NCBI GenBank assembly: GCA_004764695.1
Contig: SMSO01000032.1
Location: forward strand, 5,054,483-5,118,482
Length of the DNA stretch: 64,000 nt
Origin: Schizochytrium sp. TIO01
Lineage: Eukaryota > Protista > Bigyra: Labyrinthulomycetes
Direction of reading: 5' to 3'
In this document: positions 20,371 through 24,775 of the stretch, piece by piece
How positions within the stretch are numbered: the stretch's first letter is position 1
Layout of the letters: every line of letters begins with the position of its first letter
Program-made: the position numbers and the translations under genes
The notes under the pieces: generated by a model
What the model was told of the DNA's origin: nothing
What the model saw: the letters and a program-made list of their open reading frames with translations, nothing else
Databases searched by the model: none

Positions 20371-21852
20371 TTACTCTGCTTCCTTCTCCAGAAACTCGCG
20401 AACGCAGTCGTGCTCATACTGCGTCTTGCAAGCTACTACGAGTTGGTCCATGTCCCACAAATTAAGCTCAGGCTCGCGTGCCGCACGTGCCAGCACGGTA
20501 GCAAGTGCCCGTGCAGACTCGCGAACAGCCTCGGGATCACCGCGAGGAAGATTACCAAGAAGTGGCAAGACCAACGTGTGGATGTGTCTCTCGTTCCTGG
20601 CACGATCAAGTGCCGCGAGGTAGCGGTCCTCCAGAGTCTCGCGAGATTCACCTCCCCTCGAGCTGACGATGTGGATGATATACTTGCTTGGCAGTTCGAA
20701 GGCAGGCGTGGTGATGACCGTCCCGGTCTCGAGCATGGAGATCCTTCGCTGCGCCATGAAAGTCTCGCACGAAACCGCTAGGCGCAGGCCTGCCTGGAGG
20801 AAGGCTTGCTCCCATACTCCACCCGGGAATGAATTCACGAGGCTTGGGGGGCACGAACGCACAACGCAGTCAGCAGCCATGTTAGTTGGCACGCCCTGCC
20901 AGACGCAGATGCGGCTGCAGAGATCCCCAAAAAGGCGCCAGAGGGGCTCATGCTGCAGCATATGATCTATATCCGAAGCCGCCTGAGTTCTGACCTCGTT
21001 CATGCGCATGCGCTGGTCCATCTCGTCCCTCAAGCTGTTCAGGCTCTCCAGCGACTCGTGATTAAAGGTGTTTGCTGGACTTTGCACAGACCTCGATCTT
21101 CTACGGCCTGAGGGTATGTCCTCTGGAGCCTCATCTGAATTACTATCGGAGCCATTTTCATCAGAATCTCCGCGCGAAGAGTCCTCATCCAAGTCGCTTT
21201 CTCCATGAGAGGATCGACTGCTTCGACGCGACGACTCCGCTGTGATGCGAACACAATCTTCGAGCTCTTCTGGAGAAGGAGGAGGATCCTGAAGAGGAGC
21301 CTCATCGAGCCACTCAACAGTGTTCTCAAAGGTCGCTTGAATCTGCCAAATGCGGCCATCTGGCAAGATCTGACCGGCCTTGGCGAGGCCTGATGCAGGG
21401 CACCGGTACGTCACATAGCCAAACTTGCTCTTCTCGTGACCAGGAGCCAAGAAACCGTGCGTCAATGCAGCTACCCGAAGGACTCCTGCAGACTGCGTCG
21501 AGAACGAAGTCATCGTCTTCGAATTTTCAGGAGATTGCACCTGCGAGGTTTGCGAGGCTGAAGAGGAGTCCGAGGAGGAGTCCGAGGAGGAGTCCGAAGA
21601 GGAGTCCGAAGAGGAGTCCGAAGAGGAGTCCGAAGAGGAGTCTGACGACTCCGAAGAGAATGAGGAGTGCGACAACGGTGACGAAGAAAGCGAAGGTGAA
21701 GACATCGAAGCAGGTTCTTCAGAAGACCTCAGGAACAGCGAGTTCGAAGTCTTATACGAAGACGGAGATGAGGACGCAGCGAGAGAGTGAGCAGTGGAAG
21801 AAAATTCACAGAGGGTCGAGCCAGTGGTCATGGAGGAGCAGCAGGAGGCCAT
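20371..21852 (-). CDS. Macrodomain-containing protein with Ser/acidic low-complexity N-terminus (start uncertain)
   Basis: C-terminal macro fold: RICVWQG..T.MAADCVV, GGV...F..AG, GTVITTPAFELPSKYIIHIV, LEDRYLAALD, IHTLVLPLLG. Confidence 0.75.
   Translation of the reverse strand: MASCCSSMTTGSTLCEFSSTAHSLAASSSPSSYKTSNSLFLRSSEEPASMSSPSLSSSPLSHSSFSSESSDSSSDSSSDSSSDSSSDSSSDSSSDSSSASQTSQVQSPENSKTMTSFSTQSAGVLRVAALTHGFLAPGHEKSKFGYVTYRCPASGLAKAGQILPDGRIWQIQATFENTVEWLDEAPLQDPPPSPEELEDCVRITAESSRRSSRSSHGESDLDEDSSRGDSDENGSDSNSDEAPEDIPSGRRRSRSVQSPANTFNHESLESLNSLRDEMDQRMRMNEVRTQAASDIDHMLQHEPLWRLFGDLCSRICVWQGVPTNMAADCVVRSCPPSLVNSFPGGVWEQAFLQAGLRLAVSCETFMAQRRISMLETGTVITTPAFELPSKYIIHIVSSRGGESRETLEDRYLAALDRARNERHIHTLVLPLLGNLPRGDPEAVRESARALATVLARAAREPELNLWDMDQLVVACKTQYEHDCVREFLEKEAE
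21560..21643. repeat. 12-bp coding minisatellite (GARGAGGAGTCC) x7
   Basis: Seven tandem units that encode DSSS repeats on the minus strand. Confidence 0.9.
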
Positions 21853-22548
21853 GGGCGCAGGCCGTCAGCCTGGCCGCCTCGCGTGGTGCCGACGGGAAGG
21901 CACCGTGGCGAGAAGCGTCGTCGGGAGCTGAGGGGCGTCAGCGTAGGTACGAGCGGCTGCGCGGTGATTGTGGCGGAGGCTAAGAGCCTGAAGAGTTCCA
22001 CAGGTGCAGGTGCAAGAGCAACTGCCTTGCTTGCGGGCAGCGAGGGCGACTGGAGACGCAAGCGCGATCGGGCTTTGCCCTTCGGACACTCAGTCTCCCT
22101 TTTACTATTCGCAGTTCATTCCATTTCATTTCCATTTCTTTTCACATTTGAGGAAATTAATTAATCAATTAATTAATTACACTAATCAGAAAGTAAACTC
22201 TGAGTCAGTTCAGTTTCATTTTGATTTTGTATTAACTAAAATTAATAAGCGCATGAACAGTAGGGTCAAAAAACGTAAAAGTTCGATAACTTATATTTCG
22301 ATGTGATTGTTTCATATTAACCATATATTATGTTTAGTTAGATTATTAATAAGAAGTAGAGGTTAGATAAGAAAATGGGGAGGCCGAGGAACCGACAAGC
22401 TCCAAACACTGCAAGTGGAGCAAACCTCGAATACAAACCAGCAAAGTTCTTTCACCATCTCATTGGAAACACGCTAGTCGCTTACTTGATGCTTCAGGTG
22501 CTGACGCGTGATTTGCGGGGGAGTATTGAAGTAATATACAGCTACTGT

Positions 22549-22573
22549 CTAACCTAACCTAACCTAACCTAAC
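22549..22573. repeat. (CTAAC)5, equivalent to (TTAGG)n on the minus strand
   Basis: Five perfect pentamers just upstream of the IS607-like element. Confidence 0.9.
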
Positions 22574-22731
22574 CAAGCCCTCATGTCCGACACATCCTGT
22601 GTATCGGACTGACATCATACATTCATTCCTGCCTGTATCCAGACCTGAAACCCCAATAACTCATATATCATCCTCTTTCTCTTTCTCCTGAGTTCGTCAT
22701 CCTTGTCAGACTACCTCTCCACGCTTCACAG

Positions 22732-23367
22732 CTCAGGCTACTCTGCAATAGGAAGTTTGGGGTCTCAGCAAGCGCCCTTCGGGGCTGGGCCGACGGCGGA
22801 CGCGTGCGCTTCGCGCGCTTCCCCGGAGGCAAGCGCATCTATGCCAGCGACGATGTTGAGCGCATCTTTGATTGCGGTTCCACCGGCCGCGAGCAACGCA
22901 GCTCTGGATGTACCGTTATCTACGCCAGAGTGTCCTCGGTCAAGCAAAAGGAGGACCTCGAACGCCAGGTTGGCGATCTCCAGCGCGCCTACCCAGATGC
23001 TTCCGCCGTCTACAAAGACATCGGTAGCGGGGTCAATTTCAAACGCCAAGGTCTGTGCTCCCTACTGGACGCCTGTGACCGCGGCGGAATCGGCCAAGTT
23101 GTGGTCATGCACCGCGACCGACTTGCGCGAATCGCAGTCGACCTCTTGGAACACCTTTTCGAAAGATAAAATGTCAAACTCGTGGTACACGGCCAAGATG
23201 CACATGCCGGAGACTCAGACACCTTCACCAAAGACCTCCTCGGAATCATCACCGTCTTTGTGGCATCGCATCACGGAAAACGAGCAGCGCAAAATAGACG
23301 GCGACGACGCAGCGAGGAAGAAGCGAGCTCGCACGAAGGCGCGCAAGACCATCAAGAAAGAATATAA
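22732..23367 (+). pseudogene. tnpA: IS607 TnpA (N-terminal HTH plus serine recombinase), interrupted by TAA at 23167-23169
   Basis: HTH KFGVSASALRGWADGGRVRFARFPGGKRIY, catalytic IYARVSS..QKEDLERQ, DIGSGVNFKRQGL and VVVMHRDRLARIA. It continues in frame past the stop as NVKLVV...DLLGIITVFVASHHGKRA. There is no in-frame ATG between the upstream stop (22657) and the HTH. Confidence 0.9.
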
Positions 23368-24646
23368 CCTTGTCCGTGCCAGAAAGGTTAGGGTATATCC
23401 TACTAAAGATCAACGTACACAGTTGCTTAAATGGTTTGGTGTCACTAGAAGAGCCTACAATATTGGCGTTGCGTTTCACCGAGACATGGCGAAGGGCGAG
23501 AAAGAAGCCATCAAATTGCACCAAGAAATGTGTATTATAAAGGATCCCAAGACGAAGCAGGTTTTGGTAGATGAAGATGGGAATCCAAAAACACATGGGG
23601 CACTTGGTGGAGAACTGAAGGCCGTCCGATATAAAGAAAAGAATCCTACTCTTACATGGGTGCTCGATGTCCCCCAGGCTATCCGTGATTCCGGGATTCG
23701 GGATTTCTTCAAGGCTCTTAACTCGGGACGAGCCAAAAACGAAGAACTCGCTGCACAAAAGAAAGTTCACGAGCAATCTTTTTATAAGTTTCGGACCAAG
23801 CGTGACGAATCACAGATTTTCGAAGTGAATGCACGTACCTGGAATGCGAAGAAATCAAAGACCTCCAACTTTCTAAAAGAATTCCGAATGCGTAAAGAAA
23901 AGTTCCCCGACCAGATTTCGAACGCCATGCGTGTGCAAATGAATCGCCTTGGGCATGTCTACTTCTGCTTCTTACGAGAAGAAAAAAAGCGTCCAATGGA
24001 CCAGGCACCCAAGGCGCACCATGGTGTCATTGCTCTAGACCCGGGTGTTCGCTCGTTTCAGACGATGTATGACGCCGATGGCCGCGCCATTGAATGGGGC
24101 ACAGGGAAAGATTTTAGAACCATATTCTATCTCTGTCGCCGCGTTGATAAGATCCAAAGCAGCATTGATAAAAAGAAAACTGCATCCAGTGATAAAGACA
24201 ATTTCAACACCCCCTTGAAGCGCGCCTTCTATCGCGCCCAACTCAAGATCAAGAACAAGATCACTGAGATTCACCGCAAGCTCGCGCTTTGGCTTTGTGA
24301 AAACTATCGTGTTATTCTCTTGCCCAAGTTCGAAACCTCTAAGATGAGCAGGAGGATGGAGCGACGGATCTCCAAGAAGTCTGTTCGAATGATGTGTCGT
24401 TGGTCCCATTTTGGGTTCCGCCAGGCTCTCATTCATAAGGCTGAGATGTTCCCGTGGTGCAAGCTTGTTCTTTGCCAAGAAAGTTACACTTCCAAAACAT
24501 GCAATGAGTGTGGTACCCTCCACCATAACCTCGGGGCATCCAAGATTTTCCAATGCCCTAATCCCAAGTGCAACCATGTAGCAGACCGTGATGTCCATGC
24601 CGCAAGAGGCATCCTTTTACGCTACCTATCCAAGGACATGATTTAA
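22841..24646 (+). CDS. tnpB: Fanzor2 / IS607 TnpB-like RNA-guided endonuclease (frame open from 22649; first ATG 22841, alternative ATG 23171)
   Basis: OrfB-type HTH RARKVRVYPTKDQRTQLLKWFGVTRRAYN. RuvC-I VIALDPGVRSF (Asp at 24038). ILLPKFE at the canonical RuvC-II site, with the alternative Glu in CQESYTSKTC (24479). Zinc finger CNEC...CPNPKC. RuvC-III DRDVHAARGI (Asp at 24590). Basic NLS-like ARKKRARTKARK. Confidence 0.92.
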   Translation: MPATMLSASLIAVPPAASNAALDVPLSTPECPRSSKRRTSNARLAISSAPTQMLPPSTKTSVAGSISNAKVCAPYWTPVTAAESAKLWSCTATDLRESQSTSWNTFSKDKMSNSWYTAKMHMPETQTPSPKTSSESSPSLWHRITENEQRKIDGDDAARKKRARTKARKTIKKEYNLVRARKVRVYPTKDQRTQLLKWFGVTRRAYNIGVAFHRDMAKGEKEAIKLHQEMCIIKDPKTKQVLVDEDGNPKTHGALGGELKAVRYKEKNPTLTWVLDVPQAIRDSGIRDFFKALNSGRAKNEELAAQKKVHEQSFYKFRTKRDESQIFEVNARTWNAKKSKTSNFLKEFRMRKEKFPDQISNAMRVQMNRLGHVYFCFLREEKKRPMDQAPKAHHGVIALDPGVRSFQTMYDADGRAIEWGTGKDFRTIFYLCRRVDKIQSSIDKKKTASSDKDNFNTPLKRAFYRAQLKIKNKITEIHRKLALWLCENYRVILLPKFETSKMSRRMERRISKKSVRMMCRWSHFGFRQALIHKAEMFPWCKLVLCQESYTSKTCNECGTLHHNLGASKIFQCPNPKCNHVADRDVHAARGILLRYLSKDMI

Positions 24647-24775
24647 AAAAAATCATTTCATTGAGTCGCGGGTTAGTCTAACTAATCCGCGATCGGGTCT
24701 TAGACCTGCTATGAAATGCAAGTTTTGCAAATTTTGTAGTTTAAAATCTAAGAGAGCGAATAATACAGAGACCAT
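24647..24775 (+). ncRNA. Candidate omegaRNA (right-end RNA) scaffold plus flanking guide
   Basis: Immediately after the Fanzor stop, an outer stem CATTTCAT (24654-61)/ATGAAATG (24711-18) encloses two hairpins: TCGCGGGTTAGT-CTA-ACTAATCCGCGA (24666-92) and CGGGTC-TTA-GACCTG (24694-708). This is where TnpB/Fanzor omegaRNAs are encoded. RNA ends are inferred. Confidence 0.65.

Follow-up and report, generated by a model that had tools for sequence, protein, structure and literature searches.

A 64,000-nucleotide stretch of the genome of the thraustochytrid protist Schizochytrium sp. TIO01 (contig SMSO01000032.1; the whole stretch is referred to here as the window) carries an insertion sequence (IS) of the IS607 type, which pairs a serine-recombinase transposase gene, tnpA, with a gene for a TnpB-like nuclease. 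Judged from its sequence, the second gene is a complete Fanzor2-type nuclease open reading frame (ORF) that holds all of the catalytic and zinc-binding residues. The tnpA gene lies wholly inside the 5′ third of this ORF, with the nuclease read in the +1 frame, and the overlapped part encodes the N-terminal domain that is specific to Fanzor2. This conserved dual coding of tnpA and the Fanzor2 N-terminus is the most interesting aspect of the locus. The window copy itself is very likely a non-autonomous member of a young and probably still mobile IS607-type family, and this family is under purifying selection and transcribed.

The nuclease is read from one open frame on the + strand that extends from 22703 to a TAA stop codon at 24644-24646, which bears out the uninterrupted TnpB-like ORF of a preliminary description made from the sequence alone. 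The extent of the gene is nevertheless revised, as the ORF reaches upstream of the TnpB core to the AUG at 22841 and overlaps all of tnpA. Candidate translation starts are this AUG or a near-cognate UUG at the place where relatives have their AUG. The RuvC-I Asp of ALDPG (24032-24046), the Pro of ILLPKF (24323-24325) that occupies the canonical RuvC-II position, the more C-terminal Glu of CQESYTS, the set of four Cys and the Asp of DRD are all at the places first reported for them. The order of the C-terminal motifs, YTSKTC...CxxC...CxxxxC...DRD, fits the [TS][TS]xx-ZnF-RD motif of Bao and Jurka, and the RuvC-I Asp, the shifted Glu, the zinc finger and the RuvC-III Asp are invariant in alignments of 14 and 40 sequences. 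In published work, Fanzors and the IS607 TnpBs closest to them have as their signature a DPG motif combined with a RuvC-II Glu that is shifted C-terminally (PMC10711439). In ApmFz2, the TnpB-like protein L79 of mimivirus, mutation of the equivalent residues, D324 and E467, abolishes cleavage (PMC10530073).

Searches place the protein closest to ApmFz2. Pfam recognizes Cas12f1-like_TNB (PF07282; 3.6e-13) and HTH_OrfB_IS605 (4.7e-9), and the best phmmer match among all Protein Data Bank (PDB) chains is ApmFz2 (9B0L; 2.7e-19), followed by Cas12m and Cas12f at 6e-8 or weaker; among the same chains, the Fanzor1 structures gave no match at E<=1. The scores against the NCBIfam profiles IS607_TnpB (NF038280; 57.3 bits, cut-off 350) and guided_TnpB (92.7, cut-off 100) both fall below threshold. 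For the full 601 aa, AlphaFold2 modelling from the 40-sequence alignment gave a predicted local distance difference test (pLDDT) score of 80.2 and a predicted template modelling (TM) score of 0.76. Residues 1-71 are predicted to be disordered, residues 72-175 form a structured N-terminal domain (block pLDDT 50-94) and the TnpB-like core begins at about residue 175. Foldseek ranks 9b0l first for this model (2e-19), then ISDra2 TnpB (4e-14) and Cas12f, with Fanzor1 (8gkh) far weaker (1.6e-5, TM 0.33). VIA-align superposes 432 residues on 9b0l with a Z score of 22.7, matching residues 72-601 of the model to residues 53-518 of the chain, whereas all TnpB and Cas12f superpositions begin at model residue 175-177 (Z 19.5-19.6 for TnpB). 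Since only the 9b0l match covers the model from residue 72, a Fanzor2-type N-terminal domain is considered to precede the TnpB core. That ApmFz2 is the best match by sequence and by fold, and alone covers the N-terminal domain, serves as a proxy for grouping with Fanzor2. The Fanzor2 assignment of the preliminary description is supported, with the DPG motif, the shifted Glu, the zinc finger, the RuvC-III Asp, the IS607 recombinase and the eukaryotic context all present. The basic patch that was previously likened to a nuclear localization signal, KKRARTKARKTIKK at approximately 23318-23359, is indeed there; however, it aligns with the basic 'thumb' of ApmFz2 (residues 109-130; PMC11832414), which clasps DNA, and it may also act as a localization signal. 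A second basic stretch, RSSKRR, lies within the disordered N-terminus.

An N-terminal extension of ~220 aa is common to homologues of 36-48% identity, amongst them a protein of the dinoflagellate Durusdinium and many metagenome proteins. The extension sits precisely over tnpA, in the +1 frame. Its invariant residues are C.P.W, LWSCT.T, SW[FY]T and SLW..ITENEQRK, and the invariant Trp and Cys positions demand fixed wobble bases in tnpA. A set of 93 related loci was drawn from giant-virus contigs and metagenomes, and 25 unique ones contain a full uninterrupted tnpA. The nuclease frame is +1 relative to tnpA in every one of these 25. In 18 the +1 frame is stop-free across the whole TnpA-matching region, the others having one to three stops at its 5′ edge only, and the +2 frame, with 9.7 stops on average, is open in none. 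The tnpA stop codon (23365-23367) falls at nuclease residue 176, where the TnpB-like structure begins.

A sceptical interpretation is that the long N-terminal ORF is illusory, translation beginning at the ATG at 23171 to give 491 aa and the open +1 frame arising as a by-product of the composition and conservation of tnpA. Synonymous shuffling of tnpA lowers the +1 similarity (observed z 2.2-3.8), though about half of it persists, and no stop appears in this frame in 5-15% of trials. The converse shuffle, in which the nuclease was kept, gives z ~15 for TnpA, the product under the tighter constraint (mean identity 44%, against 28-32% for the overlapped part of the nuclease), and tnpA dominates the codon-position pattern of the overlap. 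The interpretation is nevertheless improbable. Among the copies of the genomic family, the overlap has a diversity of 0.016 and shows no bias of codon position, compared with 0.045 in the nuclease-only part (position 3 > 1 > 2); dS is 0.018 and 0.032 in the overlap compared with 0.092 in the core. Apart from the uniform frame relationship and the tnpA wobble bases fixed by invariant Trp and Cys, tnpA wobble diversity in the related loci declines along the overlap from 0.66 through 0.60 to 0.53, whilst nuclease-only wobble positions stand at 0.67-0.69. The region is also predicted to be structured and superposes on residues 53-130 of the ApmFz2 N-terminal domain, and two solo loci retain the nuclease frame despite 4-5 stops in their tnpA frame.

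A plausible, mildly favoured origin for this arrangement is overprinting. In this model tnpB would have been extended upstream through tnpA in the +1 frame, with both frames translated; the nesting, together with polyadenylation ~16 nt past the right end that sets the guide length, would have made an IS607 element expressible from a eukaryotic monocistronic mRNA, in a family that is still transposing. In copies that lack the inserted repeat described below, the next AUG after that of tnpA is the Fanzor AUG, and no AUG intervenes in 14 of 17 related loci, where 9.3 would be expected; this spacing is consistent with leaky scanning. Gilbert and Cordaux (PMC3673617) mention only that ORFB of an Acanthamoeba element has an N-terminal insertion of 100 aa, and no description of tnpA nested within a Fanzor gene was found in the Fanzor and IS607 literature searched.

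The transposase gene confirms one part of the tnpA/tnpB pair proposed for the locus and corrects another: it encodes an IS607 serine recombinase, but it is not intact in the window copy. Frame 1 matches the Resolvase family of Pfam (4.5e-16) and transpos_IS607 of NCBIfam (6.3e-32) and contains the catalytic-serine motif YARVSS. In copies without the insertion, the ATG at 22375 reads in frame through a MerR-type helix-turn-helix (HTH) and the resolvase domain to give a TnpA of 233 aa, and the 233-aa TnpA of sister copies has this N-terminal MerR-like HTH followed by the serine-recombinase domain, matching profile positions 5-143 of 187 and more. The 5′ part of tnpA has a ratio of nonsynonymous to synonymous substitution rates (dN/dS) of 0.06, with dS 0.071. 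In the window copy the gene is, by its sequence, dead, as it is split by an unrelated 294-bp repeat and carries a premature in-frame TAA at 23167-23169, a codon that is AAA (Lys) in ten copies and CAA in one. This nonsense codon is common to seven copies of different sublineages, and the base change that makes it exchanges Asp and Glu in the overlapping nuclease frame (KDKM vs KEKM). An alternative genetic code for this TAA was ruled out, given that sisters carry AAA or CAA and that the Fanzor ORF itself stops at TAA.

The 294-bp insertion is common to three sister copies (L003, L007 and L017) besides that of the window. It contains a telomere-like (CTAAC)5 run at 22549-22573 and has at least 40 matches elsewhere in the genome, most of which span only its last 227 bp. 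Because it belongs to a separate repeat family with these many matches and has AT..TA ends, it is regarded as an insertion in tnpA and not an intron; a spliceosomal intron was ruled out on the AT..TA ends, which leave no slack, on the copy number and on the fact that no RNA contig skips the 294 bp.

The host genome (64 Mb in 37 contigs) contains 103 matches to the nuclease, and ~18 of these are near full length with 90-97% aa identity, 16 of them without stops. Some 20 young copies are spread over 12 chromosome-scale contigs, alongside dozens of decayed copies with many stops, and at least nine sisters (L004, L006, L008, L009 and L012-L016) carry both a full tnpA and a full nuclease ORF. Within this family the nuclease core has a dN/dS of 0.39. 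Relatives also occur in giant-virus contigs and in Durusdinium. Contamination, or a chimeric contig bearing an ordinary bacterial TnpB, had been named as a possible undoing of the eukaryotic assignment. In favour of this explanation, the literature assigns the family a bacterial, cyanobacterial IS607 origin (PMC3673617, PMC10711439) and a 2.1-kb contig filed under a Hydrogenophaga metagenome-assembled genome (MAG) holds a relative of 42% identity. It is, however, already refuted and of negligible probability in view of the distribution of copies over the 12 contigs, their eukaryotic flanks (ZW10 and Macro-domain genes in the window), polyadenylated transcripts and an MMETSP transcript, the NCBIfam IS607_TnpB score of 57 bits against a cut-off of 350, and the nearest named relative, the Durusdinium protein, being from a dinoflagellate. 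The MAG contig (L130; NZ_JAHCKK010000207.1, 2116 bp), whose product is Fanzor2-like, is probably a mis-binned eukaryotic or giant-virus contig, and a scan of contigs for bacterial relatives returned nothing else.

A more serious possibility is that the window copy is a young relic that does nothing, its ORF open only through recency and destined to decay as the degraded copies have done. Its tnpA is already doubly broken, dozens of multi-stop copies surround it in the genome, the dN/dS of 0.39 was measured on the family and not on this copy, and the expressed contigs differ from it at several sites. On the other hand, all invariant residues are kept and its seven private residues all fall at variable REC positions, the insertion-bearing subfamily produced at least four copies after tnpA had broken, and RNA contigs match the window without mismatch over 22478-22962 and 22703-23275. 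The relic explanation is considered unlikely, and membership of a young, probably mobile family remains the preferred reading.

Evidence of expression comes from several sources. An MMETSP transcript encodes a 601-aa ORF of 97% identity that starts at the AUG equivalent to 22841. Contigs from three RNA-like sequencing runs cover 22478-24684 and the transcript of the left neighbour; in these contigs 22136-22403 and the right flank are uncovered and none spans the 22456/22751 junction. Because the left end and the right flank are uncovered, the contigs are considered to derive from RNA rather than DNA. Those that start inside the nested repeat (22478, 22703) and fit the window without mismatch suggest that transcription of insertion-bearing copies begins in the repeat or upstream of it; the first AUG downstream is then that at 22841. 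The starts inside the repeat raise the side possibility that it carries a promoter, and also the idea that the nested repeat has allowed a host-co-opted Fanzor to be expressed without transposase for a purpose of the host. Depth in run X6 is even over 22703-24617 and far above that of the neighbouring gene, although it is summed over copies. Co-option is nonetheless very improbable, as the subfamily is multi-copy and polymorphic in the manner of a transposon, no orthologous fixed single-copy locus was found and contig depth is a poor measure of expression. Separately, a contig of run X4 fits 22703-23275 (573 nt) without mismatch and continues into 255 unlike letters (TAGTCGAATGAAG...); it could stem from a copy that is truncated or rearranged, or represent a form of transcript as yet unexplained.

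At the 3′ end, a contig of run X4 reads 15-17 nt past the right end of the sister copy L013 and then enters a run of A, where the genomic flank reads AAAACCAAAATCGCCAAC...; this points to a polyadenylated + strand transcript that ends in the flank after ~16 nt, the length of a TnpB or Fanzor guide. With poly(A) starting at this distance, the polyadenylation site would define a guide-length piece of flank. An omegaRNA may be inferred from the structure and position of the last 130 nt of the element, which are predicted to fold at -41.5 kcal/mol (z -5.6), none of 200 shuffles being as stable. The fold is made up of four hairpins: one over the stop codon, one of 13 bp, a short variable one and a long one. 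The loop of the variable hairpin, UCUUAG, is able to form base pairs with CUAAGA at the very end, and the stem of this hairpin differs by subfamily (GGTC/GACC, GGAG/CTCC, GGG/CCC and GGGCC/GGCCC). In a comparison of 21 copies, reaching down to ~70% identity, pairing persists in 89% of cells, compared with 41-47% when partners are slid, a lenient control because the structure was derived from the window sequence. A search of Rfam with the candidate omegaRNA returned nothing above noise, and the consensus computed by RNAalifold for the 3′ 235 nt was of no use, the variable hairpin being misaligned.

Mobility of the family is indicated by a comparison of strains. In the DNA-like run X20, from another strain (65 Mb of contigs), 22257 is joined to 24771 at single-copy depth, so the insertion is polymorphic. 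In this allele the element is replaced by 25 letters, of which the first ten match window positions 24761-24770 and the other 15 are absent from the assembly; with these letters replaced, the target and target-adjacent motif (TAM) cannot be read there. A search for a TAM in the left flanks and the empty allele found no clear motif beyond a conserved CAG.

These observations allow a mechanism to be proposed by analogy with bacterial TnpB and ApmFz2. A polyadenylated RNA polymerase II transcript would run through the right end and stop ~16 nt into the flank. The protein would bind the structured 3′ end of its own transcript, at least 130 nt, as omegaRNA, with 15-17 nt of flank serving as guide, and the complex may then cut DNA that carries the TAM and a match to the guide, as the vacated or empty site does. 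When the break is repaired from a filled copy, the element would be retained or spread, as shown for bacterial TnpB, whilst TnpA supplied by intact copies could move the window copy in trans. Both proteins could be obtained from one locus by either of two routes, an internal start of transcription or leaky scanning as far as the Fanzor AUG.

Several points weigh against this account of a functional, mobile family. RNA binding, cleavage and the TAM are predictions, made by analogy. The surplus of +1-frame similarity beyond tnpA conservation is moderate (z 2.2-3.8), and covariation in the omegaRNA is weak, as 53 of 500 shuffles reach the observed score and only five pairs have changed on both sides. 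The poly(A) observation comes from one contig, and the mismatches to the window copy at several sites of the transcript contigs mean that it may be sister copies that are expressed. In a copy that has diverged from its sisters by 2-4%, youth alone would account for an intact ORF, and its intactness is therefore no proof that this copy itself works. The X20 allele, with its 25 replaced letters, is not a clean empty site. Finally, the left junction varies, and direct repeats of a kind that IS607 should not make are present at two copies.

Table 1. Features of the IS607-type element in the window
Feature	Position	Strand	Basis or content
Whole IS607-type element	22258..24754	+	Alignment of ~20 genomic copies
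Left end, non-coding	22258..22374	+	Variable spacer after CAG, TTCGAT direct repeats
Start of tnpA, ATG and 27 codons, frame 1	22375..22456	+	Severed from the remaining gene in the window copy
Nested 294-bp unrelated repeat	22457..22750	+	Splits tnpA; absent from most copies
Rest of tnpA, frame 1	22751..23367	+	HTH end, serine-recombinase domain, natural stop 23365-23367
Predicted Fanzor2 ORF, frame 2, 601 aa from first AUG	22841..24646	+	ORF reading, homologues, AlphaFold2 model
Predicted dual-coding stretch	22841..23367	+	tnpA in frame 1; N-terminal 176 Fanzor residues in frame 2
RuvC-I catalytic Asp	24038..24040	+	ALDPG (24032-24046); aligns with ApmFz2 D324
RuvC-II Glu, C-terminally shifted	24479..24481	+	CQESYTS; aligns with ApmFz2 E467
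Zinc finger and RuvC-III Asp	24500..24592	+	Cys 24500, 24509, 24554, 24569; DRD Asp 24590-24592
Candidate omegaRNA scaffold	24625..24754	+	Predicted fold, position at 3′ end
Candidate guide, flank read through from right end	24755..24771	+	TnpB/Fanzor biology

The limits of the element (Table 1) follow from the ~20 aligned copies, in which family similarity begins at CAG(N0-6)...AAAAAACGT (22258) and stops at ...TTTAAAATCTAAGAG (24754). The span of 22575-24775 given in the preliminary description is consequently wrong, its start falling within the inserted repeat and its end lying 21 nt beyond the right end. The element measures 2497 bp in the window copy and ~2203 bp in copies without the nested repeat. 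In common with IS607, it ends without terminal inverted repeats, the single exception being one 12-nt subterminal match between the left and right ends. The left end is the most diverse part of the element (within-family diversity 0.067). At the left junctions (22258-22267 in the window copy, and L002-L019) CAG is followed by 0-6 variable letters and then the conserved end. These spacer letters vary even where the remainder of two copies is 98-99% identical, and another subfamily has five copies with the same spacer, TATGAC. Most copies show no target duplication; direct repeats of 8 and 9 nt (CCCAGTTC and TATTTGGAG) flank the sister copies L012 and L014, which have 2-10 extra letters 3′ of the right end, and in a target-site duplication test the excess of direct repeats over non-cognate flank pairs is marginal. 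From the CAG of the left junction and the GAG of the right end, the crossover dinucleotide may be guessed to be AG. The neighbours are ordinary eukaryotic genes, as first described: a Macro-domain gene on the - strand to the left and the kinetochore gene ZW10 on the + strand to the right. The N-terminal half of the Macro-domain protein (20371-21852) contains a long serine/aspartate repeat, (SSD)n. Neither of two minus-strand ORFs within the element (187 and 175 aa) matches a Pfam family.

The locus adds a compact (491-601 aa) and, by its sequence, apparently intact Fanzor2 from a cultivable and transformable protist group, and the ~16 natural variants in one genome are useful for mining editing enzymes. 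The young copies, intact transposase genes, insertion polymorphism and transcripts together give the family the look of recent mobility. If this is true, the family would rank with the best candidates for natural transposition of a prokaryote-type IS in a eukaryote, a matter left open by Gilbert and Cordaux in 2013 (PMC3673617). The complete nesting of tnpA would provide a concrete origin for the Fanzor2-specific N-terminal domain and a testable answer to how a bacterial two-gene unit comes to be expressed in a eukaryote, and it couples the evolution of transposase and nuclease base by base.

Of the known systems, ApmFz2 (L79; PDB 9B0L; PMC10530073, PMC11832414) is the most similar. It is the best match by sequence and fold, its DPG Asp, shifted Glu, zinc finger and RuvC-III Asp all align, and it shares the structured N-terminal domain (RuvC-R and thumb in ApmFz2), a basic thumb-like patch at the equivalent place, the IS607 context and an omegaRNA, a candidate here, at the 3′ end and past the right end. 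Identity is nevertheless only ~20%, and the N-terminal domain spans 104 residues plus 71 disordered ones in the window protein compared with 78 in ApmFz2. The gap from stop codon to right end is 108 nt in the window element, as against ~200 nt in ApmFz2, whose TAM is GGG. ApmFz2 also resides in a virus, whereas the window element occupies a cellular chromosome. ISDra2 TnpB (PDB 8H1J, 8EXA) has the same core fold from model residue 175 (Z 19.5-19.6) and the homing-endonuclease logic expected here; unlike the window protein, it has the canonical RuvC-II Glu, no N-terminal domain and a Y1 transposase (IS200/605), and it gives no significant whole-length sequence match. Fanzor1 (SpuFz1, PDB 8GKH) is likewise a eukaryotic TnpB descendant with a shifted Glu, but its fold match is much weaker (Foldseek 1.6e-5, TM 0.33), phmmer finds no match at E<=1 and its transposon partners are different.

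Bacterial IS607 elements with TnpB (ISXfa1 and the cyanobacterial 'pro-Fanzor' ISArma1; PMC10711439, PMC3673617) resemble the window family in having two genes, a serine-recombinase TnpA, no terminal inverted repeats, the DPG motif with shifted Glu and a right-end guide RNA (a candidate here). In contrast, their TnpB lacks the N-terminal domain, the nearest bacterial match, P0109, being 363 aa long; the window protein scores far under the NCBIfam IS607_TnpB cut-off; and tnpA and tnpB overlap only slightly in bacteria, whilst in the window family tnpA is fully nested. The IS607-like elements reported from Acanthamoeba, Phytophthora and Ectocarpus (PMC3673617, PMC3627910) are similar in placing ORFA and ORFB in eukaryotic chromosomes, including those of stramenopiles, and ORFB of Acanthamoeba Ac3 has a comparable 100-aa N-terminal insertion. 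Those earlier elements were found as few or mostly fragmentary copies of no demonstrated mobility, and an overlap of frames was not described for them, whereas the window family comprises ~20 young copies, with insertion polymorphism and transcripts.

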